A stretch of DNA of 64,000 bases, taken from positions 62,001-126,000 of the IMG/VR virus record IMGVR_UViG_3300027770_000026; one strand, written 5' to 3'. The position numbers and the translations under genes are program-made. Of the stretch, positions 17,618 through 53,282 are shown piece after piece (position 1 is the first letter of the stretch; the number at the start of each line of letters is the position of its first letter). The notes under the pieces were generated by a model, which had not been told where the DNA came from, ran no database searches, and worked only from the letters and a program-made list of their open reading frames with translations.

Positions 17618-18861
17618 TATACACCTTTTTTCTTTTGCTTGTGCTTTATCAAAGGCATTTCTTCTGTACCGTTGATATACTCTTTAGTTATCGTTACTGT
17701 GCTTACTGTTTGTAAATTCTTATGGCTAAGACTGTACTGCAACGGTGTTAACTTCTTCTCTAATATACTGCGCAAACTACGTGCGCCTGTTCCCTGCTTG
17801 ATAGCTTTTTGTGCAATACTACTCAGTGCTTCCGGTGCAAACTTTAATTTTACGGGAGAGAACATAGCTTCATACTGTTTGATGATACTGTCTTTTGGTT
17901 CCGTAAGGATCTTGACCATTTGTTCTTCTGTTAGCATTTCAGTGGAAGTGATAACCGGCAAGCGTCCCATTAGTTCTGGGATCATACCATACTTTACCAA
18001 ATCTGTTGCAGCCAATAAGTCCCAATTAATTTTCTTGTTAGATGTTACATTAGCAGAAAATCCAATACCAGTGCTAGTGGACTGTTGCTGCTCTAGATGT
18101 TTCTCTAGTCCAACAAATGCTCCACTACACACAAAGAGGATATTACTAGTGTCCATCTTAACAGTATCACCTAGTCCAAATGGCTTATCTGGATCTGTGG
18201 GTACACTGATCTCGCAGCCTTCGATCATTTTTAGTAGTGCTTGCTGCACACCTTCGCCCGACACATCTCGTTCTACCGTAGCACCACTGTGTGCCCGTGC
18301 GATCTTGTCAATCTCGTCAATAAAGATTATACCTTGTTCAGCTAGTTGTACATTACCATTAGCTGCTTGCAGCAATCTACTTAGGAGTACATCTGCATCG
18401 TCACCTGCATAACCTGCTTGAGTCAGTGCAGTAGCGTCTCCGATTATCATTGGTACACTTAGCAAGTTAGCAATGGCTTTGACCATTAGAGTTTTACCCG
18501 AACCAGTTGGTCCAAGTAACAAGATGTTGCTCTTATCTACTCGTACACTTTCTTTGTCTGCTTTACGGAACAATCGTTTGTAATGATTGTGTACAGCAAC
18601 ACTAAGGACTACCTTAGCTTTATCCTGACCAATTACAATTGTATCAAGATATTCTTTAATCTCAATCGGTGTTATTATTTTAGGTTTAGTTTTAGGTTGG
18701 GGCGTTTTGACTTCGGGTACTTTTTTAACTAATAGGTCTACTATAGACTGTACACATATGTTGCAGATACCCGCTGTTTCACCAACAATCAGACGCTCAA
18801 CTTCTGCCTGAGTTCGCTGACAAAAACTACAGTGCTTTACCGTATTTTTTTTGGATTGCAT
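17617..18861 (-). CDS. clpX: ClpX AAA+ unfoldase
   Basis: C4 zinc finger (CSFC...CNIC), [36 protein letters not shown] loop, GARSLRSI. Confidence 0.96.
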
Positions 18862-34847: not shown

Positions 34848-35849
34848 TTATTTTGCGGAGAAGTGTACTTTGGGCATTGCGTCACGATCGCTACCCCAAA
34901 TCTGTGGAGAAGATACACGCATCTTGTCCATTACGTCTGCAATGTCAGTGAAGTACAGGGAAGTTTGGCTAGGATAGTCTAGCATGAGAATGCCAGAGAA
35001 TCCACTGGTTGCTACGTAATTATAAAAGCTGGACATACCATATCCGCGACGTATACCTTCGAGGTCACCGCGAACTAGTGCGGCATGCAGTTCTGTTGTC
35101 TTATCCGTAAAGCGGAACATGTTCTTGACCACGCTATCAGCTACAGACTTGCGTTGGGGTGCGGTCAGAGTAGGGAAATAGTTTTGCACATAGTCTATCG
35201 CAGTAAGTGATTGCTTGCCCGACAGATCAATGCCAACACTGGTCAGTGTCTGCTCCACGGCCTGTGGCTGAAACTTGGATTTAGCGGGGTCGTACAATCG
35301 ACCAGCATTGACCACACGCGACTTTATTTCAACTGCTTGCTTGCCTACCTGTATGTCGCCGCCGCCTTCGCTGCTGCCTGACCATTTGATATGTGGATTG
35401 AGCAATGCAAATGCTCGCTCGCCAGGACCAATTCCAGCACTTCTGAGCGCACTGTGACTGCTCAGTGAATTAAACAGTGCAACCGACATTGGGCCACCCA
35501 TCATCCAACTGCTAAAAGATTGAATCTGGTTTGTGGCAAGTAGTTCCGATGCATCAACATAGCCCGACGAGCCATAGCTCTTGAGCATGGCTTCTTTGGA
35601 TTCAAAACTGCCCGGTAGTCGTTCCACAATGTCAGTAAATACCGACAGGTGTTCCTTGACCATACCGTTGGCCAATGATATGTTTTCGCAAAGATGTTCG
35701 ATGTGCTTGCGATTAAGAATGGTGTAAACCTGGTTGAGCATTTCCACATCTTCGGATGCATTTACTAGCTTGTTGATTTCCAAACGGATGTCCACTGACA
35801 TCTTGTCAGTATCCTCGATCAGAAACGTATCAAAATCCAAACACTTCAT
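34848..35849 (-). CDS. PD-(D/E)XK restriction-endonuclease-like protein
   Basis: GPGE...GDIQV...VEIK; start MKCLDFDTFLIE (ATGA overlap). Confidence 0.6.
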   Translation of the reverse strand: MKCLDFDTFLIEDTDKMSVDIRLEINKLVNASEDVEMLNQVYTILNRKHIEHLCENISLANGMVKEHLSVFTDIVERLPGSFESKEAMLKSYGSSGYVDASELLATNQIQSFSSWMMGGPMSVALFNSLSSHSALRSAGIGPGERAFALLNPHIKWSGSSEGGGDIQVGKQAVEIKSRVVNAGRLYDPAKSKFQPQAVEQTLTSVGIDLSGKQSLTAIDYVQNYFPTLTAPQRKSVADSVVKNMFRFTDKTTELHAALVRGDLEGIRRGYGMSSFYNYVATSGFSGILMLDYPSQTSLYFTDIADVMDKMRVSSPQIWGSDRDAMPKVHFSAK

Positions 35850-36331
35850 TTTGTACTCCAGACCCATGCAGCACTACGTGCGGCACCAATGGGTGTTTCT
35901 AAGTATGTAGGTATTTTCAGCAGGTCAATGCCCAATGCTTTGCTACACTTAAAGTAGTTATCTTTTCCAACGATTTTTATAAATCCCCGTCCACGATAGT
36001 CCCATCCATCGGGTCGAGGTTCGTTTCCATTGCCATATTTACCACTGTAAACCCGTATGGCAATCTTGTCCTGTTTGTGTTCGTATAGGCTTGCTAGTGT
36101 ATAGTCAGGAAACTGTTTGGGAAAGTGTTTTTGCAAATCTGCAGCAGAATATTTGAAAGTTTCCGTCAATTTAGTTAAATTATCGCTGGCTTTCACAATG
36201 TCAACGATAAAATTGGGGCTATCTATCCTAAATTCTGCCATTGCGTCTAGTATAGCAGGCAGATATTTGTTGGCTAACACAGGTTTGACATTTGGAAACT
36301 GTTCCAAAAATTGTTCTATGGTAATGTGCAT
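35846..36331 (-). CDS. degenerate GH19 lysozyme/chitinase-like protein
   Basis: Y...GNG...DGWDYRGRGFIKIVGKDNY; HES catalytic motif absent. Confidence 0.75.
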   Translation of the reverse strand: MHITIEQFLEQFPNVKPVLANKYLPAILDAMAEFRIDSPNFIVDIVKASDNLTKLTETFKYSAADLQKHFPKQFPDYTLASLYEHKQDKIAIRVYSGKYGNGNEPRPDGWDYRGRGFIKIVGKDNYFKCSKALGIDLLKIPTYLETPIGAARSAAWVWSTK

Positions 36332-36338
36332 GTTGTAT

Positions 36339-37037
36339 TTAATCCAAACTTAGCTGTTGGATTAAAGAATGGTTAATGAATTCACTTAGCTTGTCAAGAT
36401 ATCCCTGATTGCGTAATACCTTAAAGGTCAGGTTCTCTACACCATACTGACCATTCTTTGCAAGGCCTGCTTTGCGCATGTTGTTGATCTTGTCTTTAAT
36501 CTCACGCGCCTCGTCAACATCACCGTGTTCAATCGTTTGATCAACCTGACTCATGTAGCTTTTAACACGGGCACTCACATTGCGATCATTTACTGCTGGT
36601 TGTTCCTTGCGTGGCTTCTCTATCCATTTGTCGCGTAATACTGAATAGCAGCCATTGGTAACATTAACTTGATCGATGTCTTGTGCATATAATTCTACTG
36701 GATGTCCGTGAATTTCAACGGGCATATTAAAATTCCACAAACGCTTTTTAGCGTCAAACAATTGTTCTACCAGTTCAGGATCGCAAGTTAGTTTCTTCTT
36801 GTCAACGATTAGGTGTAAGTCAAAGTCACTGTAGTCTGTATAGTTGTAACTGGCCAGACTGCCCGTTAGCTGTACGTCAACTAGGGGTAGCGGATCTATT
36901 TTAAGACTACGTGCGAATTGAAGTGCAGTTTGCAATAAATGCACCTGCACTTCTTTATCTAGCTTGCCCTGATTCCAAACTTTAGGATTAAGCTTGTCAT
37001 GGAATTGAACATTCTTATCAACGTAGCTCTGTTCCAT
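36339..37037 (-). CDS. pol-beta-superfamily nucleotidyltransferase
   Basis: LTGSLASYNY..YSDFDLH, PVELY.QD, ENLTFK.LR. Confidence 0.8.
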   Translation of the reverse strand: MEQSYVDKNVQFHDKLNPKVWNQGKLDKEVQVHLLQTALQFARSLKIDPLPLVDVQLTGSLASYNYTDYSDFDLHLIVDKKKLTCDPELVEQLFDAKKRLWNFNMPVEIHGHPVELYAQDIDQVNVTNGCYSVLRDKWIEKPRKEQPAVNDRNVSARVKSYMSQVDQTIEHGDVDEAREIKDKINNMRKAGLAKNGQYGVENLTFKVLRNQGYLDKLSEFINHSLIQQLSLD

Positions 37038-37903
37038 TACACTGGATACTTACACTTGCCCTTGGTTTCTTCGGGTGGTAGGTACTTGCCGTAATACTTG
37101 ACAATGAGACAGTTGAGGAAGTCTGTGTATTCGGGAATCTTGCTCAACAGCGCGATATCCGCTTGGTTAATTGCCGAGTCTCGCTCGTCCATGAACTGAC
37201 CTGATTCGTAGTGTAGCTGCCACTTTCTCAGCTTACCGCCTGCCTTGGCCATGATAATGTACAGTGGACCTTGGCTGTGATAGTGGGTAAATCTATTGTT
37301 GGTGTCGCCTGCGGTACACCAGCGTGTGCCCGAGCCAATTCTGCAAGCAGCTTCCTCAGTTTGTGGAATGTAGACCTTGAAGTTAGGAGTGTCAATTACC
37401 TTGTTTGCACCCTGCATTTCCTGACGTGCAACTTCCTTGCCGGATACGTCTTCTGCACCGCCTGACAGGTCGGCTAGGTCGTAGAGATCGTTTAGGCTCT
37501 TTAGCTGTAGTAGGTCAGCAACACCATTGGGATACTTGGCTAACAGTTCTTCATTGCCTGGCTCTTTGAGCTTGGTCAGAATGGTACGCTGCGACTTCTT
37601 GAACTTGTCAATGTCTGTCTTAACTTGGTTGAGGTCTTCCATCTTGAACTGACCAGCAATGTACATGTTAGCAATGAACTGTAGATTCTTGCCCTGTGGA
37701 TCAGGGTCTGCTTTCTTAAGTGCTGCTACTATGTCCCTGGAGTCTGGTTGTTTTCCTGCTGGTGTAGGATATGAATTGTCCTTTTGCGCCGCAGCTTCTA
37801 GCTTGGCCTTGAGGTTAGTGGCAATATAATCTGCACGGTCTTCCAATAGCATGGAAGCCCAGTTGCCACGTGATTCTACAATTCGTATTTCTCTAATCTT
37901 CAT
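37037..37903 (-). CDS. capsid-tagged WCT-motif (PcfJ-like) domain protein
   Basis: MKIREIRIVE; EAAC.IG.GTRWCTA...F.HY...GPLYII...KWQLH...FMD..D. Confidence 0.7.
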   Translation of the reverse strand: MKIREIRIVESRGNWASMLLEDRADYIATNLKAKLEAAAQKDNSYPTPAGKQPDSRDIVAALKKADPDPQGKNLQFIANMYIAGQFKMEDLNQVKTDIDKFKKSQRTILTKLKEPGNEELLAKYPNGVADLLQLKSLNDLYDLADLSGGAEDVSGKEVARQEMQGANKVIDTPNFKVYIPQTEEAACRIGSGTRWCTAGDTNNRFTHYHSQGPLYIIMAKAGGKLRKWQLHYESGQFMDERDSAINQADIALLSKIPEYTDFLNCLIVKYYGKYLPPEETKGKCKYPV

Positions 37904-37932
37904 ACCAAATTCTCCATTATGCTTTATTTAGT

Positions 37933-39231
37933 TCAGAGGTTCTTAATATATTCTTTATACTTTGCGGGACTTTGCTTTTGTAGCAAACGGTCAAACGCTG
38001 GCCACCCGTTATTGTCACGATTGCGGCTATAATTTGCAATACTGCCTGCAGCAATTGTGCCACTTATAACAGCATTGACCATAATGGGAGCTATCACTTT
38101 TTCAAGTTGTACTAGAAAACGCTCTGAGGCATCATTATAATCTGCAGATTCTGTTAGTTCGGCTGCAAAATCTAATAGTTGCCGCGGCGAACTGTATTTT
38201 ACTATAGTGGGTATGCAGCCAGTCCATATGGAGCTGGTGCCGTGCTCGCTTACTAACGCATTTAGCGAATATACTACAAGGTCCTCAGCATCTTGTTCTT
38301 TAACTGCATGATCCAATAGCCAGGGTTCAAATGCTTTCACTCTATCCCCAATGAATCTCACATACGCTAATGCTGTTCTAGTATCGTTGAGTAGCATGAC
38401 CGCATGCTCTACAAAGGCATTACGATCAATGCCTTCTTCATCCTCGCTAGATGCTACATAGTTGTCTAGCAGTGTTTTTAGCAGTGCTTGATCACGTTCT
38501 ATTATCCCGTATATTGCTGGATTTATTTTATTATCAAAGTCAGTATATTCTAGGTAACCTGCTGCTGCTTGCGGGTCATTTAATTTCACAATATAGGGTT
38601 CAAGTTCAGGCAATCTGCTACTGGTATAATCACTTTTTTCATTGAGATATGCTATAAGCGATTGTGGAGACTTTGCAATTGCAGGTAATGCTTCCTTCCA
38701 CAACCTGTCGGTTAGTAACCGAGATTCGTAGTGGGCAATGCCCGCAGGGTCTTGCATTATGCGAGCTTGTATTTCGGATGTGGGCTTTATCATTGCAGCA
38801 TCGATATAGTACACCAGCTGCCTGACTGTTCCTGAAGCCATTATGGTGTTTAGGGCTTCAGGCCATACCATTGGTTTGTTAGTATTTTGAGCCCGTCTCC
38901 AAATGTATACCTCAATGAGTTCTGGATCGTTTACTATGAGTTTTTCAATTGACGGATCCCTCTTAGTGCCATTACTCATTCCACCATTCATAGTATATGC
39001 AAGTAATGCTTTCTGAAATACGTTTGAATCCTTTATATACAAGGGCATCCAGGCTAGTAGTTCCCCGCGGCGGGTTTTGCGATCCTCGGGGGTTTTTTCG
39101 CGATAATTGATCCGATGTAGCTTGCACTGCTTCCGCCAAACATATGACGGAATATGCTGTTCTCGCGTTTTATAACCCACTAATTTAGTGGGCGCAGTGT
39201 GAAATTTAAATAGGTCTATTGAATCAAACAT
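37933..39231 (-). CDS. helical-repeat protein, LYxYH array member 7
   Basis: DLFKFHTAPTKLVGY; WPEA, RLPELE, WPAFD repeats. Confidence 0.8.
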   Translation of the reverse strand: MFDSIDLFKFHTAPTKLVGYKTREQHIPSYVWRKQCKLHRINYREKTPEDRKTRRGELLAWMPLYIKDSNVFQKALLAYTMNGGMSNGTKRDPSIEKLIVNDPELIEVYIWRRAQNTNKPMVWPEALNTIMASGTVRQLVYYIDAAMIKPTSEIQARIMQDPAGIAHYESRLLTDRLWKEALPAIAKSPQSLIAYLNEKSDYTSSRLPELEPYIVKLNDPQAAAGYLEYTDFDNKINPAIYGIIERDQALLKTLLDNYVASSEDEEGIDRNAFVEHAVMLLNDTRTALAYVRFIGDRVKAFEPWLLDHAVKEQDAEDLVVYSLNALVSEHGTSSIWTGCIPTIVKYSSPRQLLDFAAELTESADYNDASERFLVQLEKVIAPIMVNAVISGTIAAGSIANYSRNRDNNGWPAFDRLLQKQSPAKYKEYIKNL

Positions 39232-39234
39232 ATG

Positions 39235-39981
39235 TTATCTTCTTGCTATCTTGTTTTCTTTGTCGGCTACCCACTGTCTATGCAGCTGATCAATTTCACT
39301 TTGACTTGTGCCAGTATGACGCAGCGCATTATAGAAATATGGATACCATTCGTCAGAATTGGCTTTAACAATGGGCTCTAACTCCGGATGACGCACGCCT
39401 GTTTCCCAAGTAAAATCAATGACCAGACGTGTACTCTGTTTAATTATATCCATTAATTTACTGGGTATTTGTATATCATTTTCAAAAAGATATCCTGCAT
39501 ACTCAATTAGTATAGTATTGCGAGTATCTCTTTTATATGAGTCAGTTGTGTCCATATTCGTCAGTACGTTTTCCAATTCAGGCCAACGCTCCCCAATGGC
39601 CTCTTTGACATATTTCATTATTATTTCCGACTTGCTGATGAGCTTGAAATTTAATAGTCTGGGTTCTATTCCGGGCAATCTTTTTCCTAGTTTAGAAGCA
39701 TATCCCACAGCAAGATGTGGACTTAGTGCTAGTACTTCTTGCACATCTAGGCCAAGATCACCTGTTTCTATTGAATACCACATGGCGTCTGCTGCATCGT
39801 GCATGAATAGTGGTTTACGTTTAACTATCTGAGATCGTTCCATGGGAATTTTATCACGGAAGAATCTCACAAAGTCAGGATGTATGTCCATTACAGCCTT
39901 TGCTGCAGTTAAAGTCTCAGGATTGCTGTGGTAATTGTACAGCATAAAATCAATTTCTTGCGATGGATCCATCTCTTCCAT
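39235..39981 (-). CDS. helical-repeat protein, LYxYH array member 6
   Basis: MLYNYHSNPETL; RLPGIE, RWPELE, RHPELE. Confidence 0.8.
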   Translation of the reverse strand: MEEMDPSQEIDFMLYNYHSNPETLTAAKAVMDIHPDFVRFFRDKIPMERSQIVKRKPLFMHDAADAMWYSIETGDLGLDVQEVLALSPHLAVGYASKLGKRLPGIEPRLLNFKLISKSEIIMKYVKEAIGERWPELENVLTNMDTTDSYKRDTRNTILIEYAGYLFENDIQIPSKLMDIIKQSTRLVIDFTWETGVRHPELEPIVKANSDEWYPYFYNALRHTGTSQSEIDQLHRQWVADKENKIARR

Positions 39982-39982
39982 A

Positions 39983-40213
39983 TTATTTGTCCTTGTCCGC
40001 TACGGGCTTTTCGCCTGTGAGATAGGGCTTGCTAAACCACAGTTTAAACCATGCATCAGTACCGGGCTTGATATTTTTCTCGCGTTCTATTTTACGCTTC
40101 TCGGTGCCAGTCATGCTGACATTGCTGCCAGGGTATTTACTCCAGTCTACTGGCTTGGAGCTGTTAGCATAGTGATCCAACCCCGCTAGTTTACGTAGTT
40201 CATCGAGGTTCAT
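39983..40213 (-). CDS. small phage protein interrupting the array
   Basis: LDELRKLAGL...NIKPGT.AWFKLWF. Confidence 0.75.
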   Translation of the reverse strand: MNLDELRKLAGLDHYANSSKPVDWSKYPGSNVSMTGTEKRKIEREKNIKPGTDAWFKLWFSKPYLTGEKPVADKDK

Positions 40214-40319
40214 ATTTTTTGATATCCCAATTTAAATTCACGGCCATTAAATCCGTAACGAGCAATGGCACTAATTTTTTATCCACATGATACTTGTATA
40301 AATTTAATACTTGTTTCAT
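40200..40319 (-). pseudogene. truncated LYxYH array member (39 aa)
   Basis: ATG 40319 overlaps the upstream TGA; MKQVLNLYKYHVDKKLVP...EPR*; no repeats. Confidence 0.6.
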
Positions 40320-41095
40320 CGGAAAACCCTTCCTTTAAATCCGCGCTCTTTTATCAATTGATATCTTGCTGAAAGATTGTGTAATTGCGCTAGATACAAA
40401 TTCCACGGTGAGTCAAAGTGTGGATAATCTTTAAGTTTTACTGAAGGTGATTCTTCATCCCAGTCGATGTCAACCGGTAGATCCATGTAATCTTCCTCGG
40501 CAGTTTCCAACCACTCTCGCCTATTAGGATTCCAATTGTAGATAGCATCCTCTAGCTCGGGTATACGTTCCCATCGTTTGCCGCCTGTGACGGCCTGATG
40601 GAAAGCTGTTACAGGATCGTCACTTATGCGGGCTAAGACTTTTTTCACAAAGTCAGGATACTTTTTTATCAGATCTTTAAGCTCAAAATGCCCAAGATAT
40701 TCGTTTAGTATTTCTGGTGCGGCTTTTATTATCTGATCAAAATACTCAGGTGCAACTATACCTAGCACATCACTGGTATAATCCGCTATCGATTCGGGAT
40801 CAGTTGCTATAATCTGCTCTACTGCGCCACGTCGTGGCCACAACTGGTCTGACACACCCTGCTTTGTGGTGCAATTCTGATAGATTTTTGCCGAACGATA
40901 TGCTATGTCTGGATCTTTTCCCAGTACGGACTGATATTTGTGTATTGCAGCAACTGCCATTTTTGCCTCGGTTGGCCCTCTCCAATAGTCAGTGTTGGCT
41001 ACTTGTTTAAACGCAATAGTTGGCACAGTTAATTGCTTATCATAGCCAATTAACTCGTTGGGAGAGCTGTGATATGTATATAAATTAAGTCTCAT
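40316..41095 (-). CDS. helical-repeat protein, LYxYH array member 5
   Basis: Start re-set to MRLNLYTYHSSPNELIGY; LGKDPDIA, LWP, RIPELE. Confidence 0.8.
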   Translation of the reverse strand: MRLNLYTYHSSPNELIGYDKQLTVPTIAFKQVANTDYWRGPTEAKMAVAAIHKYQSVLGKDPDIAYRSAKIYQNCTTKQGVSDQLWPRRGAVEQIIATDPESIADYTSDVLGIVAPEYFDQIIKAAPEILNEYLGHFELKDLIKKYPDFVKKVLARISDDPVTAFHQAVTGGKRWERIPELEDAIYNWNPNRREWLETAEEDYMDLPVDIDWDEESPSVKLKDYPHFDSPWNLYLAQLHNLSARYQLIKERGFKGRVFR

Positions 41096-41804
41096 AACCG
41101 GCTGCGCTTGCGTCTGATACTGCTTGTCTTCCGTCTTGGAAGGCCAAAGTACTAAGGTAATATTCCCATGCTGTTTTGTAAGATGTTGTGAGGCCATGGT
41201 GTCGTGTAAAGCTAAGGTGATTTAACTGAGGACTATTCTTAATGAGATCCTGCCAGTCATCCTCGGACATGCGCAATAATACGGGCTCTATTACAGTATT
41301 ACGCCGCGTGGACCGAGCAGAATATGCAATTGAAGCTGCAATATCTTTACTGAGCATTTTCAGCACCTTATATTTAAAATCAGGATCCACGTAATAGTTG
41401 TCTTTTACCAGATAGCCTAGATATTTTGCCACAAATACTGGATCCAGTTGACCTAGTATGTCTAGATATCTTGGATCCCGTTGTAATTTACTGCCAATAT
41501 GATATTTTAAATGCTCGTCACGATGCTGGGGCGAACGCAACAGTGCCATTTCAACTTCGCCACCAACAGGCCATAAATTATCAATTTCGCTATTTTTGTA
41601 TATTTCCGCTGCACGTATTGCAACGTCTAGGTCTTTACCCAGTACATCCTGATACTGTTTCATTAGTCTGACTTTTGCGTCAGTGCCAGGTATGTTTCTA
41701 ATTTTATCAAATAGAATTGTAGGGATCATCTCATGGGATTCATACCCTATTAATTCCATTGGATCAGTGTGAAATGCAAAAATGTTTCGTTTAATATTTG
41801 TCAT
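41085..41804 (-). CDS. helical-repeat protein, LYxYH array member 4
   Basis: Start re-set to MTNIKRNIFAFHTDPMELIGY; YQDVLGKDLDVA, LWP. Confidence 0.8.
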   Translation of the reverse strand: MTNIKRNIFAFHTDPMELIGYESHEMIPTILFDKIRNIPGTDAKVRLMKQYQDVLGKDLDVAIRAAEIYKNSEIDNLWPVGGEVEMALLRSPQHRDEHLKYHIGSKLQRDPRYLDILGQLDPVFVAKYLGYLVKDNYYVDPDFKYKVLKMLSKDIAASIAYSARSTRRNTVIEPVLLRMSEDDWQDLIKNSPQLNHLSFTRHHGLTTSYKTAWEYYLSTLAFQDGRQAVSDASAAGYET

Positions 41805-41805
41805 T

Positions 41806-42651
41806 TTATTTTGTAAATCTCGATGCACGGCGTCGTGCTGCTTCTGCTTCACGTGGGGTTAGCATGCTCAGATAAAGGTCCCACGCAGTTTCATCTGACG
41901 GGAATCCTGTTTCACCGCGCCAATTTTTATTTTTATTAAAATATATTATGCGTTCTGCTTTTAGGAAAGGTGTACGCACATCTGCAATTTGTACATACAT
42001 TAAGCTTGCTAGCACATCTTGTGCTATAATATCTTCTAGTTTGCCTCTGAATTCAGGTGGAGTTCCAGCCCAATCTTCGTGTCCATGATCTTCAAGATAA
42101 TCCACTGCATCTCGCGGAGATAACTGTAATAGTGTGGGCTCTAGTTCGGGAATATGGCGCGTGACCACGAACCTTGCAAAGCGCGAAGCAAATACAGGAT
42201 CCTGTTTAATTAATTCAAATTCACGACTGTTCTTGGGCCATATGAGGTCTTTACCGTTGCCTTCATATCTAACGGATAAAGGCATTTGGTTTACTTGATC
42301 AAGAATATTGCGTAATGTTTCTTTTGGTCCAGGATATACTGCGGTACTGCGTAATAATTGCTGTATAAGGTTGAGTAATTCCTTGCTGGCACTTTTACAT
42401 AATCGTGTAATATGATATACTTCCTCAACCGATTCGGCATAACGATGTCGATTATTAATTAATTTAGTTAGAACTCTAAAAGTATTTTCCACAAGAAGTA
42501 TTAGGTCGTTGTCATGTGGCCCTCTTATTAATTTATTTTGTAGTGCGTTTGTCTGCATACTAAGTTGATTTTTAATATAGGGCAGCAGATTCATGCGCTC
42601 TTTATAGCCACTTAATTTAGAGGGTGTATCGTGATAGTCGTATAGTCGCAT
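41806..42651 (-). CDS. helical-repeat protein, LYxYH array member 3
   Basis: MRLYDYHDTPSKLSGY; IWP, QDPVFA, HIPELE. Confidence 0.8.
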   Translation of the reverse strand: MRLYDYHDTPSKLSGYKERMNLLPYIKNQLSMQTNALQNKLIRGPHDNDLILLVENTFRVLTKLINNRHRYAESVEEVYHITRLCKSASKELLNLIQQLLRSTAVYPGPKETLRNILDQVNQMPLSVRYEGNGKDLIWPKNSREFELIKQDPVFASRFARFVVTRHIPELEPTLLQLSPRDAVDYLEDHGHEDWAGTPPEFRGKLEDIIAQDVLASLMYVQIADVRTPFLKAERIIYFNKNKNWRGETGFPSDETAWDLYLSMLTPREAEAARRRASRFTK

Positions 42652-43406
42652 TAGTTTTGATGCTCGCGCTTGTTATCAATTTGTCGCATTCTCAGCGTCA
42701 AATCATCCGCGTCACTGGGATTCTTCATGCCTTTGGCTATTTCTCCCACTGCCCATCTGATCAATGCCCCACTGTTTGGATCTGCAGCATATTCTTGCAT
42801 TAGTAATTCCTCGCCCTCGGCCCAACGTTTTTTAATCATAGCTAGGAATACTGCTGTTGCCGTTACGTCTGACAACATGCGTTCACGCGCACGTTCCCAA
42901 AAACTTGCAGGCGTTTGGTTGTATTTCTTTCCTTCAAATTGTGCAGCATACAATGCAATATCCATTGCAGGAGCTGTGAGAATCCGCTCGTTGTATTGTG
43001 AATCCAATGGCAAATCAACTATGCGTTCCGCGTATTTCATACGATCTGATATGGTTCCGTCTTGATCAATTCTGTTGCGCATGTCAACATTAACGCCAAA
43101 CTTTTCCATGTATCTTATCAGATTTGTTAAATCCCGTGCATTGGCTGCTGCAAATTTTTCTTCGTTTCCGTATAACGGGGCACCTTGATACATGAAGGCA
43201 AATTCTGCAGCAAGATCAGGATCTTGCGTTATTGTTTTTCTATAATGACGCAGTGCCTGTTCATGATCGCCGGTAAGTTTGCGACTTGAACTTGCCGACG
43301 GGACCAAGGAGCGCAATCGCTGATATGCTATCGCAGGTATTTCACTTTGATAGTCATCGCCTACTAAGTGCGGGCCAGTATAATAATTGTATAGATTTAA
43401 AGGCAT
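42651..43406 (-). CDS. helical-repeat protein, LYxYH array member 2
   Basis: TAAATA 4 nt before MPLNLYNYYTGPHLVG; QDPDLA, KRWAEGE. Confidence 0.8.
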   Translation of the reverse strand: MPLNLYNYYTGPHLVGDDYQSEIPAIAYQRLRSLVPSASSSRKLTGDHEQALRHYRKTITQDPDLAAEFAFMYQGAPLYGNEEKFAAANARDLTNLIRYMEKFGVNVDMRNRIDQDGTISDRMKYAERIVDLPLDSQYNERILTAPAMDIALYAAQFEGKKYNQTPASFWERARERMLSDVTATAVFLAMIKKRWAEGEELLMQEYAADPNSGALIRWAVGEIAKGMKNPSDADDLTLRMRQIDNKREHQN

Positions 43407-43436
43407 GCAGTATTTAGCTGCAGGTTGGGATATGGG

Positions 43437-44168
43437 TTAGTCTCCCGGTACGTAACCCCACTTCTTAGCAGCTTCCGTACGTTCAGGAAAATCTGCTAGG
43501 TATGTTCTAACATAGTTGGCTTTTACTAATGTGCGCTCGCCTTCGGGCCAAGGTGCTTTGACCACACGCTGAATATAGGTCAGTGTAGGGTATCCCATTC
43601 TGAGGATAGTGGGTTCTGCTGCAGGCCAACGTTTACCCATTATCTGAGCGTAGAAAACCAAAAACTTGTTTTTATATTTTAGTTCGTCGTGTGTTCTTTC
43701 GGGTAAATCTAGTAGAATTTTTTCCAAGTCTGGCCAGGATTTTAAACCCACTTGCTGCATATAGAACATGGTATGATGCAGGGTGTCTGAATCGATATTA
43801 CTTTTTATTATTTTCTGTATTGCTAATTTTTCAAATTCTGGCCAATGACCTTTAAAAAATTGATGTACGTATGGTGCTAACTGTTGAATTTCAACATCTA
43901 AATCCTTATGCAATATTGCATGTTCAATTGCAGGCGATCGTTTATTGGCAATTGCAGTAGCATAAAACAATGCTTGACCAACATCGCCGGCAGCAGCCAG
44001 AGCTTTTTGCAGATATTCATCTTGCTGCTCGTATGCTTCTTCAGGAAAATCATCAGGATCTAATTCTCCCCCGTAGTATGACGCAAGAGTACGAAGCTGC
44101 GCACGGTCTGAACCAATTAGCTGCTTGGGATCATTATGATATCCCCATAAGTTCATACTTAAACTCAT
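43437..44168 (-). CDS. helical-repeat protein, LYxYH array member 1
   Basis: MNLWGYHNDPKQLIG; five Y...(R/H/S/P)(W/S)PxxE repeats. Confidence 0.8.
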   Translation of the reverse strand: MSLSMNLWGYHNDPKQLIGSDRAQLRTLASYYGGELDPDDFPEEAYEQQDEYLQKALAAAGDVGQALFYATAIANKRSPAIEHAILHKDLDVEIQQLAPYVHQFFKGHWPEFEKLAIQKIIKSNIDSDTLHHTMFYMQQVGLKSWPDLEKILLDLPERTHDELKYKNKFLVFYAQIMGKRWPAAEPTILRMGYPTLTYIQRVVKAPWPEGERTLVKANYVRTYLADFPERTEAAKKWGYVPGD

Positions 44169-45100
44169 GACTCATCCAGTTCCCATGGACCGTAGTTTTT
44201 AGTCTTAACCATCCATTTAAGTGCAGCAGTTCTGTCGTATTTGCGATACTGCCCTGGGTCGTTGGCATTTACTTTGCCCAATTCGTAGTACTGTTCCTTG
44301 CGCATCACAATGTTTCTGCCATTACTGGTATCAAGTACAACATCGCCTACTTCATTCCAAGCATGCTCATGGCGCACACCTTCGATGCCACCCTGTCCGG
44401 TAACCATAGCGTGTACTAGCACTAGCCCCGGTATCTCATCGCGTATTACGTTCTTACCCGCAGCCTTAAAGCAATCGCCTAGTTCTTTGGCCTCACGTAG
44501 TTTCTTCTTACGCATTAGCAGTGCAGGATATCCATCACGGTTCACTTTGCTACCAAACTTAGCGGCTTCAATGGAGGTTTGATTTAATCCCACATCCTGT
44601 GTAACATTCTGCGGAGTAATACGTCCCACACCTTCGTTAACCATGCGCTTAAACAATGGTCCACGCTTTAAAGCTCGTGTACGCTCCAGGTACATACCCT
44701 GGTTCAGTGCTTCAATTATCTTGGGAGTTAGGTCACGATTACGTATGTCGTCCCTAAAGAACAGGTGTGTCTCTATAGGTATATTGCCTTCTAGCTCTTG
44801 CACAATCTGCATGCGATTACGACCTTCGTGGCTCACTACTTGTGCGGGCTCGGAATAGTCGCTGGAATCAAACCAAGCTACGGGTATTTGTATAATAAGG
44901 AAAGGTGCGCCAATTGCAGCACCGTCCTCGATAGCTTTTTCTACGTGTGTGTTTCTGTTGTCACGCGGCAAAAATGCAGCAAGGTCTAGAAATACAGATG
45001 GCTTCATTAGCACACGAAGACCGCGGTAGTCTACTTCTTGGTTATAGGGCGTTGCGCCCAGACCCTTACGGTTGTCAATTGTTACTTCGCTGATCTTCAT
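44165..45100 (-). CDS. capsid-tagged polyprotein: ParB/Srx-like domain, short module, transglutaminase/papain-like domain
   Basis: MKISEV; HEGRNR; VNE|GVGRI; LRE|...GDCF...HAW.E...VLD. Confidence 0.6.
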   Translation of the reverse strand: MKISEVTIDNRKGLGATPYNQEVDYRGLRVLMKPSVFLDLAAFLPRDNRNTHVEKAIEDGAAIGAPFLIIQIPVAWFDSSDYSEPAQVVSHEGRNRMQIVQELEGNIPIETHLFFRDDIRNRDLTPKIIEALNQGMYLERTRALKRGPLFKRMVNEGVGRITPQNVTQDVGLNQTSIEAAKFGSKVNRDGYPALLMRKKKLREAKELGDCFKAAGKNVIRDEIPGLVLVHAMVTGQGGIEGVRHEHAWNEVGDVVLDTSNGRNIVMRKEQYYELGKVNANDPGQYRKYDRTAALKWMVKTKNYGPWELDES

Positions 45101-45720
45101 TACAATTCCTCGGCAAACCAGGGATCAATTACTACCAGTGTGCCGTCTCTGCGCCGCATGACGTTTTCTGTGTGCAAGTCCCAGCCTAAATTATTTAGCA
45201 ATCCGGTGTTGTATAACAGTTGCAGTAGAACATACAGCACATGATACTTTTCCCAAGCACGTGGCTTAATACGTCTGATACTGTTTATTATTTCAGGATT
45301 GTCATACGTAGCCCATTCTGCGGAATCCTGCAGCTTGTGGTGTACCTGCGCCCACTTTATGTCCTTGCGAGCGTATTCACTCAGCTGCCATACTACAGCT
45401 TCTTGTGTGCTGCCCTTGCGCACGGGATATAGTCGTTCCATTGCGATACGGTGATAGTGTATGCCATTGTGTATAAATGGTTCATGATGTTTGCCGCTGG
45501 GTAGTGTATGGAATCTTGGTAGATTTTCAATATCACTGTTACGTTGGCAAAAGTGATAGAACTTCTTAAAGGTGCGTACAGCATGGCTTAGTTTACCTTC
45601 GGGCATGAGTATTTTAATCACATGCTCGCTGCTACTGGTCCACACGCTAGCGTCTGCGCCATGCCCAAGCTTTTTATAGCCCTGACGATGCAGATCATGC
45701 TCTAGATCTTCTAATATCAT
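45100..45720 (-). CDS. Ser/Thr protein kinase-like protein
   Basis: LGHGADASVW, VIKI, MERL, DLHTENVM, VIDP. Confidence 0.85.
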   Translation of the reverse strand: MILEDLEHDLHRQGYKKLGHGADASVWTSSSEHVIKILMPEGKLSHAVRTFKKFYHFCQRNSDIENLPRFHTLPSGKHHEPFIHNGIHYHRIAMERLYPVRKGSTQEAVVWQLSEYARKDIKWAQVHHKLQDSAEWATYDNPEIINSIRRIKPRAWEKYHVLYVLLQLLYNTGLLNNLGWDLHTENVMRRRDGTLVVIDPWFAEEL

Positions 45721-46982
45721 TTGGGCAATTTAACGGGAGTTTGTTTACGAGTCATTAGTGCAGCAAGATCGCTGCGATTAATGTAGCCAATTCTATACTG
45801 TTCCATTGGCGGTAAATCTCGCATAGATTTAAATTTGGCACTTGGTACACTGTATATCAGCTTGTAGACCTTGGTTAGGTATTCTTGTCGATATGCTTGC
45901 GGATCCACAGCAGCTTCTAATGCTACTACCAATCGGTTCACTGTGTCAACGATTTTTTCAACGGGTTCACTAAGCCAATCCCCGCCCGCTGAACGTAGTT
46001 CAATGCGGTCAGACTGAAAGTTAACACTAAGTCTACCAAATATTCGTAGAGCTTTTTGTGCTGCAGCCATATCACCTGTACGTAGTGCATCGGCGATTTC
46101 TAGTTCAGCTGCGGGAGATGCTATTTTACCCGATGCGCGAACACGATTAGCTGCGCTGGGAGCATAGCTATTAAGTTCTCTCTTAAATTGTTTCAGCACA
46201 TATTCATCGCCAAGCAGTGTAATCAACTTGAGATAATCCAGCTTGTCGTAGTTTGGTACGCTGACGTTAATGTGCAGTCCGCAAGTGCGATTGGTTTCTG
46301 CTTTTACTTTATATGCATAAAATTTAACATTATTAATGGCGTCTATAATGTCGTCTACAGCCATGGGATAGCTGACAATCTCCGCACCAATCCATTCTTC
46401 ATTACCGTCGTGGTGTTGCACAGTGCTGTCCGTTTCAAAGGTAAAATGATTGGGTTCACGTGGTCCACCATGTCCATTAAATGGTACAGTGGCATAGCCT
46501 GTTATTTTTGAAAAGCGATCTGCAGCTACTTTTATTTCTTCTAGTGCAGTACTACTAGTGGGATTTTCATAAGGCCAATCCACAATGTGGTCATACCCTT
46601 CATATACTGTCAAAGTATAATCTAGGTCTTCAGCTTCTAGAAAATCTTGCTGTTCATTTTGTACTGCATTACGAATAAATTGTTCGTAGTCATCATCTTC
46701 AATATCCAGTTCTTCTGATAGTGCTACCGCCCAGTCGTGTAGTCTACGTTCAAGCTGGGCGTTCAGTCTCGCAATTGATCCACTGCTATTAACCCCTAAT
46801 TCCCCAAAGAACTCTAGTATTTCGTCAATGCTGGTAACACGACGATTGTAAGTAAAGTCTGGAACAATTACATTATCATCACGTGGAACCAGCATCTCAA
46901 ATTCAATGCCAACTAATGCCTTGCTGCCATAAGCCTGCGCAGCAAGCCGCTGCGAACTCATTTTGATCTCGCTGAGTCTCAT
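45717..46982 (-). CDS. putative amidoligase (COOH-NH2 ligase)
   Basis: GIEFE, ETDST, EIVSYP, TCGLHINVS, IELRSAGG; MRLSEI start. Confidence 0.82.
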   Translation of the reverse strand: MRLSEIKMSSQRLAAQAYGSKALVGIEFEMLVPRDDNVIVPDFTYNRRVTSIDEILEFFGELGVNSSGSIARLNAQLERRLHDWAVALSEELDIEDDDYEQFIRNAVQNEQQDFLEAEDLDYTLTVYEGYDHIVDWPYENPTSSTALEEIKVAADRFSKITGYATVPFNGHGGPREPNHFTFETDSTVQHHDGNEEWIGAEIVSYPMAVDDIIDAINNVKFYAYKVKAETNRTCGLHINVSVPNYDKLDYLKLITLLGDEYVLKQFKRELNSYAPSAANRVRASGKIASPAAELEIADALRTGDMAAAQKALRIFGRLSVNFQSDRIELRSAGGDWLSEPVEKIVDTVNRLVVALEAAVDPQAYRQEYLTKVYKLIYSVPSAKFKSMRDLPPMEQYRIGYINRSDLAALMTRKQTPVKLPK

Positions 46983-48124
46983 TTTTTGTCTAGTTTCAAC
47001 GCAGAACGTGCAATTGCGCTCTTAGCAGTTTCCTCGATTGGTACGCAATTGTTCACACGCACACCATCTTTTACTTTGGTCTTAGGGTTGCCAATCTTTT
47101 TACCTTTCCAGCATTTGGGATCTAGTCGTGTTTTGATTGCTTTCTTTTCCAACAAGTTCTGCTGTTGTTCTGGTGGGCTTTCTTCGTCCCCGCTAGCCCA
47201 CGATATTGGAAAGATACGGCCGAGATTTAATATTTCGTGCCCAACATCATATTCTGTTCCGATGAACTCAGATGCTTTAGACTTTTTCTTAATTTCATCT
47301 GCATTCTTAGCCATTAGTTCCCCTATCTTTTTCATAAGACCGGGAAACAAACTGGCAAACCTTAGATCGTTAATGTCTAGACTATGTCTGTTTTCCTGTT
47401 CCGCATTTACTAACTGACGGGTTGACGCATGCAATTGCCACTTGCCGTTTTTATTCTCAAGATTTGTTTTGTCTGCAATCATGATAATTGGACCGTCAGG
47501 CATGTATCTACGTGACCAAGTTAGTCCGTTGCTACCGCCCGTACAGAAGTTGGCCTGTATGCCTTCAGCATTATTGAACGTATAGCAAGAACCATAGTTG
47601 TAGGGAATCATTATATAGAAACGATCATCGTTCATTAGCACAGTTTCGCTTCTCTCACGCTTGTGCTTTTCAACCATTTCTTGATTCTTAATTTGATCCA
47701 ATTGCGAGCTGTACTTGCGCATGGCTTTTTGTATGTCTTCAATGTTTTTAAATCTATTAAAGTCCTGATCCTTAGGCTCTAGCAAAGACCGTATGTTAAG
47801 TGCATGCCATTTGCCCAGCGTGTCTGCAGCTTCGCCGCTGATGTCTTCCCAGTTTGCATGTCCGTTTGCATACTGGCGTGCAACCCATAGGTCAAACTTA
47901 CCGCCCGACAAGTCACCATAGTTACTGGTGCTCATTACTCGATCCAGCATGTCGCTCCAGGCTTGTACGATTTTCTGTTCACTGGGACGTGGTCCCAACT
48001 TGGCAACTACATAGGGAGGAAGTGTGCCATCTGTATTCCAGTTAATCGCTATGAACTTGGCTAGTCTGGGATCTGCTTTTAGCTTTTCTGCAACGTTTGC
48101 TTCTAGTATTTTTTCTAATCTCAT
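46979..48124 (-). CDS. capsid-tagged FCT-motif (PcfJ-like) protein with C-terminal CWKG...NCVP module
   Basis: MRLEKILE; ANFCTG...Y..DGPI...KWQLH; LLE|...CWKG...VNNCVPIEE. Confidence 0.7.
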   Translation of the reverse strand: MRLEKILEANVAEKLKADPRLAKFIAINWNTDGTLPPYVVAKLGPRPSEQKIVQAWSDMLDRVMSTSNYGDLSGGKFDLWVARQYANGHANWEDISGEAADTLGKWHALNIRSLLEPKDQDFNRFKNIEDIQKAMRKYSSQLDQIKNQEMVEKHKRERSETVLMNDDRFYIMIPYNYGSCYTFNNAEGIQANFCTGGSNGLTWSRRYMPDGPIIMIADKTNLENKNGKWQLHASTRQLVNAEQENRHSLDINDLRFASLFPGLMKKIGELMAKNADEIKKKSKASEFIGTEYDVGHEILNLGRIFPISWASGDEESPPEQQQNLLEKKAIKTRLDPKCWKGKKIGNPKTKVKDGVRVNNCVPIEETAKSAIARSALKLDKK

Positions 48125-49114: not shown

Positions 49115-49133
49115 AATCGTATAGAGTATTTAG

Positions 49134-50090
49134 CTATTCGTCTAGATCAGTGATGTTCAATCCTAGACGTTTGAGGTCTCGCATGTAGCGATGTTCCTCT
49201 TCCTCACTGCCAAAACTCAGCATGGTTTGCGGCGGGCCTGTACCAAAGTCCTTAGGATCTGCGTCATCTAGATCGTTGATATGTGTGCCCAGCTTGTACC
49301 AGTCGTATACGTCGCGTACACCCACTTTTACTGTACCTTTGGGGAAGGGAATTAAACTATGCTTGTGACTTTCTTCGCCCTCTTCGCCTTGCTCATCGTC
49401 GGCGTCTTCGTTGGTTTGTTCAGCATCGTCTACATCTTTTTTGTACTTTTTGTACAGCTCGCGTCTACGATCCAAATGACTCAACCCTGCATTAATTTTG
49501 CGGGTAGTAGCGGTCATACCTTTCTTTACCGTATTACCTACACGGGACTTCCAATACCATACTGCAATTCGTGCTGCATGTTTAGGTTCTGCTGCTAGGT
49601 CAGGATTGTTTACTAGGTCTAAGCCCAGTGCTTTGCCAGCTTTAGCGTAGTTATAACGTCCAGTTAATTGAATGTAACCTCGGCCGTGGAACAGTTCTCC
49701 ATCCCCGTCTTCTGTGTTGCCCAATAACTTTGCAGTTGTGGGATTGTATTTCTTTTCGTACTTGTGAAAGTGTGGATCATTATCGTTTGGCGTTTCGTGC
49801 ATGCGAGTAAAGCCCATGCTTTCGTGTGCTGTATGTGCTAGAAACTGTGCAAGCTCGTCGCCCGCCATCTTTGCATCAAGTGCTGCACGTAGTATTATGC
49901 GCTCGGGCTGTAGTAGTTCGTGCGCAGAATGAATCACTTGAACAGGGTTAGCACCAAGTTCTTGTTTGTAGTGATCCAATACGCCCTTGCTGATTGCGCC
50001 AATTCCAAATGCTGCAAGTAGAATAGCTCCAATCTTTTCCTTAATCGATGCTTCTTCTAGTGTTTGTTCAGTAAGCTCATGTGCTCGCAT
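49134..50090 (-). CDS. capsid-tagged GH19 lysozyme/chitinase with extra C-terminal module
   Basis: AQFLAHTAHES, FHGRGYIQLTGRYNY, AVWYW, TRKINAG; MRAHELTE. Confidence 0.9.
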   Translation of the reverse strand: MRAHELTEQTLEEASIKEKIGAILLAAFGIGAISKGVLDHYKQELGANPVQVIHSAHELLQPERIILRAALDAKMAGDELAQFLAHTAHESMGFTRMHETPNDNDPHFHKYEKKYNPTTAKLLGNTEDGDGELFHGRGYIQLTGRYNYAKAGKALGLDLVNNPDLAAEPKHAARIAVWYWKSRVGNTVKKGMTATTRKINAGLSHLDRRRELYKKYKKDVDDAEQTNEDADDEQGEEGEESHKHSLIPFPKGTVKVGVRDVYDWYKLGTHINDLDDADPKDFGTGPPQTMLSFGSEEEEHRYMRDLKRLGLNITDLDE

Positions 50091-53238: not shown

Positions 53239-53282
53239 TAGATTAACTCCAGCATTGCTTTATTTAGCAAGGCTGCAATCAA

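Follow-up and report, generated by a model that had tools for sequence, protein, structure and literature searches.

In the 64-kb stretch of DNA analysed here (the window), which belongs to the uncultured viral contig IMGVR_UViG_3300027770_000026 (265,892 bp), from a jumbo phage, seven ATG-start genes follow one another in tandem orientation on the minus strand (37933-44168), each encoding at the N-terminus of its product a conserved segment that we call the handle. Sequence comparison identified the seven genes as paralogues of a widespread, undescribed phage family, in which the handle is an autonomous module placed by evolution on several unrelated binder scaffolds. In the explanation that we prefer, to which we give a probability of roughly 0.4, the handle would be a docking module on ejected virion cargo, with a neighbouring gene product, the GTxWCT-domain protein, as the best candidate for its partner.

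The array, the handle and the family

Stop and start codons of the array genes mostly overlap or abut. The core of the handle comprises 16 residues, N-L-Y-x-[YFL]-H-[ST]-N-P-[ED]-x-L-x-G-Y, with the consensus NLYKYHTNPEELIGYD, and a looser pattern, N-L-Y-x-[YFL]-H-x-x-P-x-x-L-x-G-Y, is met by all seven. Searching with the handle expression revealed seven matches in the relevant frames, all at the seven N-termini, against a mean of 0.2 in 50 shuffles, and one further match, which was non-genic, elsewhere in the 64 kb. All on the minus strand, the genes were numbered m1 to m7. The body of m1 (43437-44168, 243 amino acids (aa), handle at 44112-44150) is the most regular alpha-solenoid of the seven. 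It is followed by m2 (42651-43406, 251 aa), with the handle variant NLYNYYTGPHLVG at 43356-43394 and a degenerate repeat body, and by m3 (41806-42651, 281 aa), also with a degenerate repeat body, in which the handle stands directly after Met1 (42607-42645). The helical body of m4 (41085-41804, 239 aa, handle at 41745-41783) has diverged past the repeat model described below; m5 (40316-41095, 259 aa) joins a near-consensus handle, NLYTYHSSPNELIGY (41045-41083), to a repeat body; m6 (39235-39981, 248 aa), again with a repeat body, carries its handle (39904-39942) 12 residues after Met1; and m7 (37933-39231, 432 aa, handle at 39175-39213) has a long helical body. All seven share one plan: the handle is followed by a helical body marked by the signature R-x-P-x-x-E-P-x-I, and the protein closes with a C-terminal tail that is also conserved. 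Outside the handle the paralogues are 15-33% identical, m4 and m5 sharing 33% over 177 aa. A sequence-only reading of the window had described a tandem array of seven genes with a common N-terminal motif, which holds for the seven open reading frames (ORFs) and their seven pattern matches, except that a gene for a 76-aa basic protein without handle or repeat, not a member of the family, interrupts the array between m5 and m6 (39983-40213, minus strand). The same reading had called the genes AT-rich, which they are only marginally, their GC content being 0.395-0.439 as compared to about 0.44 for the window.

A family profile was built from 19 members, consisting of the seven, nine from L002 (a syntenic 17.5-kb contig, the closest relative) and three orthologues; among 1.84 billion cluster representatives, 1,822 matched this profile at E <=1e-3. 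In canonical relatives the body is an alpha-solenoid of 26-aa two-helix repeats (..DPxxAYxYAxxVIKGRWPEAEPxIAK..), of which the window bodies are degenerate forms. Units of roughly 25-35 aa had been described from the sequence alone; in the canonical relatives the period is 26 aa. A repeat-only hidden Markov model (HMM) was significant on five of the seven bodies, namely m1 (E = 4e-23), m6 (2e-9), m5, m3 and m2 (3e-3), whereas those of m4 and m7 were missed. The full-length family HMM, made only from 16 unrelated metagenomic handle-plus-repeat proteins, matched all seven window proteins (E 2e-23 to 2e-13), with E values of 8e-14 for m2, 2e-13 for m3, 3e-16 for m4, 3e-22 for m5, 9e-18 for m6 and 1e-22 for m7. 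Inspection of 157 sequences revealed three dominant architectures: handle with repeats or a diverged body (35 sequences), an N-terminal GTxWCT domain with the same repeats (59 sequences), and repeats alone, up to 2,253 aa. In none of the 35 + 59 proteins did handle and GTxWCT domain occur together. RWPEAEP repeats, with as many as 27 WPxxE cores, make up most of the giant proteins P0006-P0009, P0034 and P0046 (1,585-2,253 aa); several of these giants have signal-peptide-like starts, and P0034 (L196) sits on a 275-kb contig resembling another jumbo phage.

The handle was found well beyond this solenoid. A logo of 178 unique handle sequences was strongest at Y3 (0.93), H6 (0.90), P9 (0.96) and L12 (0.98), and in 104 of the 178 the handle came directly after Met1. 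Behind the unique handles of the collected loci stood 101 alpha-solenoid, 19 leucine-rich-repeat (LRR)-like and 26 other bodies, the last including MORN-like ones, one DUF7222 and several non-repeat bodies, and single arrays may mix body types (L009, L007). The LRR bodies are built of 22-aa LPDNLTVxGxLxLxxTxIT repeats, and their homologues carry Pfam LRR_1 or LRR_4, one of them being named leucine-rich repeat protein; the MORN-like bodies, with 23-aa Gly/Asp-rich repeats, were so likened by eye, with no Pfam match. Among the homologues of one LRR body, 52 of 120 start with the handle, and the remainder have other N-terminal heads, including MKLLxILLEQ-type and ..LLAGV-type. Comparison of handle codons among the seven genes revealed synonymous differences in 61 of 121 codon pairs for identical residues, which indicates that selection acts on the handle peptide and not on a DNA element; a DNA-level element, such as a recombination box or a product of gene conversion, was ruled out on this ground. 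Because the same residues head LRR, MORN-like, DUF7222 and non-repeat bodies, a cap specific to the solenoid cannot explain the handle, and an autonomous docking head is favoured instead.

About 70 loci were gathered from IMG/VR by means of the family alignment and the handle DNA pattern. HMM annotation revealed that most contigs have tandem arrays of 1-7 genes, the overall range being 1-27, so that the variable-size arrays looked for in phage metagenomes were indeed found. The largest array, in IMGVR_UViG_3300035181_001867 (L010/L011, 359-18654), has 27 consecutive handle-plus-repeat genes and is preceded by a partial GTxWCT gene. Its members contain 4-11 repeats each, and their N-terminal 60 residues are almost invariant. 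Within these repeats, positions 17, 21 and 25 (i, i+4 and i+8 of the first helix) had an entropy of 2.2-3.3 bits, against less than 1 bit at framework positions, and this is how a binding surface varies when the scaffold that carries it stays constant. L002 has nine members, compared to seven in the window, with the m4 orthologue at a different position, and the identity to the L002 orthologue is 51% for m1, 44% for m2, 30% for m3, 67% for m5, 37% for m6 and 40% for m7 (448 aa). The idea of a constant handle on variable binders, raised by the sequence-only reading, is borne out by one handle on many bodies, arrays of 1-27 genes, variation on one face and conservation at the level of the peptide.

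AlphaFold2 models were all-helical for both m1 (mean predicted local distance difference test score (pLDDT) 79) and the canonical member L016:10001-10582 (pLDDT 96.5, predicted template modelling score 0.88). Residues 1-50 of m1 had a pLDDT of 38-57; residues 1-20 of the canonical member, which hold the handle, had 83-88, and between them and the first repeat lie four short helices. This suggests that the handle is part of a small folded head and not a loose peptide. Read as a floppy signal peptide, the second addressing or docking peptide proposed earlier is therefore not supported. Foldseek searches of the m1 and canonical models against PDB, and of m1 also against BFVD, gave best E values of 0.4-0.9 with template modelling scores below 0.4, the top, non-significant matches being two-helix solenoid proteins (of the HEAT, ARM, TPR, Sel1 and designed helical repeat type).

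No assignment above threshold was obtained in Pfam, PHROGs or NCBIfam for the seven or for the canonical relatives. Among the Pfam helical repeats (TPR, HEAT, ARM, Sel1), a sub-threshold TPR match was seen in m2 (20.9 vs 35.2 bits) and nothing in the others. A PDB sequence search with the family profile gave no match, nor did a megablast comparison of the region with 50,697 phage records, and a full-text literature search for motif strings gave chance matches such as 'cowpea' and epitope peptides. In tblastn of an LRR-type member against cultured phages the LRR body was matched, but the handle was not. The handle DNA pattern, which is narrow, had three matches in 185,579 species-representative genomes, a number expected by chance, and none was confirmed by HMM, so that within the reach of this pattern cellular genomes gave no hint of the family. 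Judged by these searches, the handle-plus-binder family is undescribed, being absent from Pfam, PHROGs, NCBIfam, PDB and the cultured phages of INPHARED.

Tags, junctions and the GTxWCT protein

About 11 minus-strand genes at 28086-53238 start with M[KR][IL]xE[ILVF] (for example MKISEV, MKIREI, MRLSEI, MRIREI, MKINEF). Several fusions bear on the nature of this start. The 381-aa and 421-aa genes of the window correspond to one 823-aa protein in L002, in which the junction ..NISE-IKMSS.. is the counterpart of MRLSE-IKMSS in the window. Two uninterrupted ORFs, P0012 (819 aa) and P0019 (1,061 aa), contain four and three handle-plus-repeat units, respectively, and all six of their internal junctions read [LIV]-x-E-[AT]-M-N-L-[YF]; with no stops in translation table 11, these polyproteins were ruled out as artefacts of an alternative genetic code. 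Behind its three handle units, P0019 ends in the N-terminal domain of the 311-aa protein encoded beside the window array, the junction ..VNE-D.. aligning with MKISE-V of the window gene. Likewise, the handle genes of L013 start with MKLHE-MNLY, and those of the 27-gene array with MKLRDLFE-A-MDLY. The hydrophobic-x-Glu is thus kept when internal, apparently as expected of a prohead-protease site, and since it persists as an internal junction in fused orthologues, the M[KR][IL]xE[ILVF] start is suggested to be a very short cleavable N-terminal tag. The flanking tagged genes would then presumably encode capsid cargo.

The consensus of the T4 prohead protease is (L/I)xE. In T4, gp21 cuts short N-terminal peptides off internal proteins (PMC9958956), and related giant-phage proteases cleave after AXE or SXE (PMC5694885, PMC10052503). 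The closest cultured relative of the window phage is the Pseudomonas jumbo phage PA5oct, with a DnaB-like helicase that is 47% identical, and the head of PA5oct is of T4 type, gp152 being a Peptidase_S77 and gp154 a Gp23-family capsid protein.

Directly downstream of the array lies the gene for a GTxWCT-domain protein of 288 aa, which starts with MKIRE (37037-37903, minus strand) and is the candidate handle partner. HMM search identified a second GTxWCT-domain protein, of 381 aa, upstream of the array (46979-48124, minus strand). The domain has the signature G-S-G-T-[KR]-W-C-T ... GPLY ... QxHxE..FMD; it has no Pfam model, is listed as unknown in PHROGs and had no PDB sequence match, and its conserved Cys and His hint at an enzyme. 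PA5oct gp205, which starts with MKLFEV and is homologous to both the 288-aa and the 381-aa proteins, is annotated as a structural protein and was found in the virion by electrospray ionisation tandem mass spectrometry (PMC7318152). Unlike in gp205, the domain is fused to RWPEAEP repeats in the 59 metagenomic proteins. A GTxWCT gene is located beside arrays in nine contigs and forms the most frequent non-array cluster in array loci.

Other genes and sequence elements around the array

Directly upstream of the array is the gene for the 311-aa protein (44165-45100, minus strand), which starts with MKISE and has an N-terminal domain with an HEGRNR motif; no family match was found for it. Its C-terminal part has conserved Cys and His, and L002 keeps the N-terminal domain only. 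Next to it, a kinase-like protein of 206 aa (45100-45720, minus strand) matched PHROG kinase families (E 1e-8 and 2e-6) and, weakly, Pfam Kinase-PolyVal (19.2 bits vs a cut-off of 27), and is 78% identical in L002. The block is bracketed by two glycoside-hydrolase-19/endolysin-like genes, both on the minus strand, at 35846-36331 and at 49134-50090, the latter being the longer and having a tag-like start, MRAHEL. Between the interrupting 76-aa protein and its orthologue in L002 the identity is 93%. The N-terminal sequence of this protein, MNLDELRKLAGL, is similar to those of the PA5oct virion protein gp203 (..NDILRLAGV..) and of one LRR protein (..RMQLLAGVI..), and may represent a third kind of N-terminal address. 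It was also observed that L006 encodes, 5 kb from P0019, a protein with an Mtd_N domain (18044-18571), a family known from targets of diversity-generating retroelements.

The genes had been thought to be driven by late promoters, a view that finds no backing here. The T4 late promoter TATAAATA is not enriched and is absent from the array region. A candidate promoter element, CTAAATA, occurs in the 30-nt gap before m2 (43411-43417, minus strand) and before the downstream 288-aa GTxWCT gene (37925-37931, minus strand). Of its 11 copies in the window, 10 are on the minus strand (further sites are, for example, 49127-49133 and 53261-53267), and many of them fall in a short gap with the next start codon 4-24 nt away. 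Overall, however, CTAAATA is just as frequent as chance predicts; it is a possible promoter core.

Possible roles of the handle

Tags, junctions and fusions, together with the proteomics of PA5oct, lead us to infer that the handle proteins are head cargo, presumably of a T4-type capsid, in which they would be internal or from which they would be ejected. In the relatives, products that are tagged with MK[IL]xE or made as polyproteins would be cut after [LIV]xE by an S77 (gp21-type) prohead protease, and the handle would then form the N-terminus created by the cut; the window phage encodes it at the N-terminus from the outset, with no tag in front. Mature proteins from all three gene layouts would begin at the handle or one residue before it. 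The handle would dock each binder onto a common phage partner, and the alternative-head architecture and the gene adjacency may point to the tagged GTxWCT neighbour as the best candidate. By docking, the binders would be brought into the head or retained in it, and after ejection the variable helix face of the repeats might bind host targets.

A number of findings weigh against this explanation. As had been noted from the sequence alone, none of the seven array genes (0/7) has the M[KR][IL]xE[ILVF] start that about 11 flanking genes possess, and no [LIV]xE site precedes the handle in the seven. Some relatives carry both the MK[IL]xE tag and the handle, so the handle is not needed for targeting there and does not simply replace the standard tag; its persistence in tagged relatives suggests that its role is probably not initial targeting alone, and its site of action may be the head, the ejection process or the host. 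No GTxWCT gene lies near the LRR-type arrays, which are mostly on short contigs, or near about half of the solenoid-type arrays collected. In PA5oct, the 30-kb region around gp205 (L004) contains neither handle genes nor RWPEAEP repeats, and tblastn of a canonical member against the cultured phages of INPHARED found none. Flanking genes are 31-93% identical to those of L002, against 30-67% for the array, which thus evolves fast for this block without being alone in doing so. Finally, the ordered handle in the model fits a cap packed in cis as well as it fits a docking domain.

This last point raises the question of whether the handle is an N-terminal capping or folding element of the repeat domain, conserved by constraints of the fold. 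Its pLDDT in the canonical member, where short helices run straight into the solenoid, would agree with such a role, as would the conserved C-terminal tail, which capped solenoids also have. However, these 16 residues also precede beta-type LRR, MORN-like, DUF7222 and non-repeat bodies in which the following segments are unrelated, the LRR type of body is found behind other N-terminal heads as well, the handle region of m1 is of low confidence in the model, and the position beside a free or newly cut N-terminus is conserved. The motif is therefore predicted to fold as an ordinary cap might in one member, yet its recurrence on unrelated bodies makes a purely structural role quite unlikely. An adaptor role, in the manner of F-box proteins, is compatible with docking on virion cargo and does not exclude it: the handle would dock the binders onto an effector machine, either a host protease or chaperone or a phage GTxWCT or kinase-like enzyme, and each binder would bring in a different host protein, such as a defence protein, to be destroyed or modified, with no need for packaging in the virion. 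A constant small head on LRR, helical-repeat and MORN-like bodies is the architecture of substrate receptors; the handle and the GTxWCT domain are alternative heads on the same repeat; the surroundings are enzyme-like (the kinase-like gene, and the 311-aa protein fused to handle units in P0019); and the handle is kept even where a separate tag exists. Since the handle resembles no known adaptor head and the GTxWCT domain has no known catalytic function, we consider this role unlikely.

Two further explanations place the handle proteins outside the head, and both appear very improbable to us. As an external decoration or receptor-binding element, the handle would anchor binders on the outer face of the capsid, neck or baseplate, much as tail fibres and spikes are held by conserved N-terminal anchors, and the array would widen the adsorption range. 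Receptor-binding proteins usually have this design, with a conserved N-terminus and a variable C-terminal binder in tandem cassettes, surface binding is common among LRR and MORN-like scaffolds, and in several T4-like contigs arrays were seen near baseplate-like genes (by eye, from N-terminal sequences only). On the other hand, the MK[IL]xE tag and the [LIV]xE junctions speak for proteins that are processed within the prohead, the 311-aa domain, which belongs to the internal block, occurs in fusion with handle units, the proteins are small, predicted to be monomeric and helical, and without fibre or beta-helix features, and the window array is located amid kinase-like, lysozyme-like and GTxWCT genes rather than tail genes. 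Alternatively, the proteins would be unpackaged host-takeover proteins whose handle mediates self-association into chains or controls their own stability. Solenoids commonly bind extended peptides, natural polyproteins have head-to-tail units, and most window members are acidic (pI 5.4-6.5), all of which could be accommodated; but none of our results favours chaining, there would be no receptor where the handle precedes an LRR or another kind of body, and the protease-type junctions argue for processing in the head.

In its logic, docking on head cargo comes closest to the internal proteins of T4 (IPI, IPII, IPIII and Alt), a diverse set with a cleavable capsid-targeting sequence as its one common feature; gp21, the protease, cleaves these proteins, and they are ejected against host defences (PMC3012670, PMC9958956). 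The handle proteins are likewise very diverse small proteins united by a short N-terminal element, with a relative, PA5oct, that has a T4-type head. Unlike the capsid-targeting sequence, the handle follows the predicted cleavage site, so that the mature protein would keep it; it is also longer (16 conserved residues in a head of about 45 aa) and is predicted to be folded. Moreover, the window bodies are repeat scaffolds in multi-gene arrays and not single unrelated proteins. As the seven lack the MK-type tag, they are not filed with the T4 internal proteins.

F-box, SOCS-box and poxvirus ankyrin/PRANC proteins combine a constant docking head of about 40 aa with interchangeable repeat binders (LRR, helical repeats and others) in large paralogous sets, which have expanded in genomes that are in conflict with a host. 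The likeness is one of architecture only, with no similarity of sequence or fold by Pfam and Foldseek, and bacterial hosts are without a ubiquitin system. Payload signals of contractile injection systems and MIX-like motifs of type VI secretion are N-terminal elements that mark unrelated payloads for one device, but these are different systems with different sequences. Polyvalent proteins, known from phages and conjugative elements, unite many conflict-related domains in one giant chain, whereas the genes described here stand singly, with only partial fusions in relatives, and in contrast to tail-fibre and receptor-binding proteins, the array stands among kinase-like, lysozyme-like and GTxWCT genes and the models are small helical solenoids. 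HEAT, ARM, TPR, Sel1 and designed repeats are similar in having stacked two-helix units, whereas the RWPEAEP repeat has a period of 26 aa and a signature of its own, GRWPEAEP...DPxxAYxYA. With 1,822 cluster representatives and without a Pfam, PHROGs or NCBIfam model or a PDB relative, the 26-aa RWPEAEP solenoid would represent a new fold class.

By analogy with the eukaryotic and poxviral receptors, it is conceivable, though doubtful, that phages of the T4/PA5oct radiation use a head of about 45 aa to plug interchangeable repeat binders into one common hub or effector. If so, many host-protein binders would be delivered or aimed at once, and the arrays, with up to 27 genes per genome, would be a prokaryotic-virus counterpart of the F-box/PRANC receptors. 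If the handle is a docking module on virion cargo or for an effector hub, it would add a second, non-cleaved addressing layer to the heads of large phages. The arrays would then hold a natural, rapidly diversifying library of small repeat binders, the targets of which are likely host proteins and possibly defence systems, and the 16-residue handle, as a searchable marker, would find such cargo in metagenomes whatever the body behind it.

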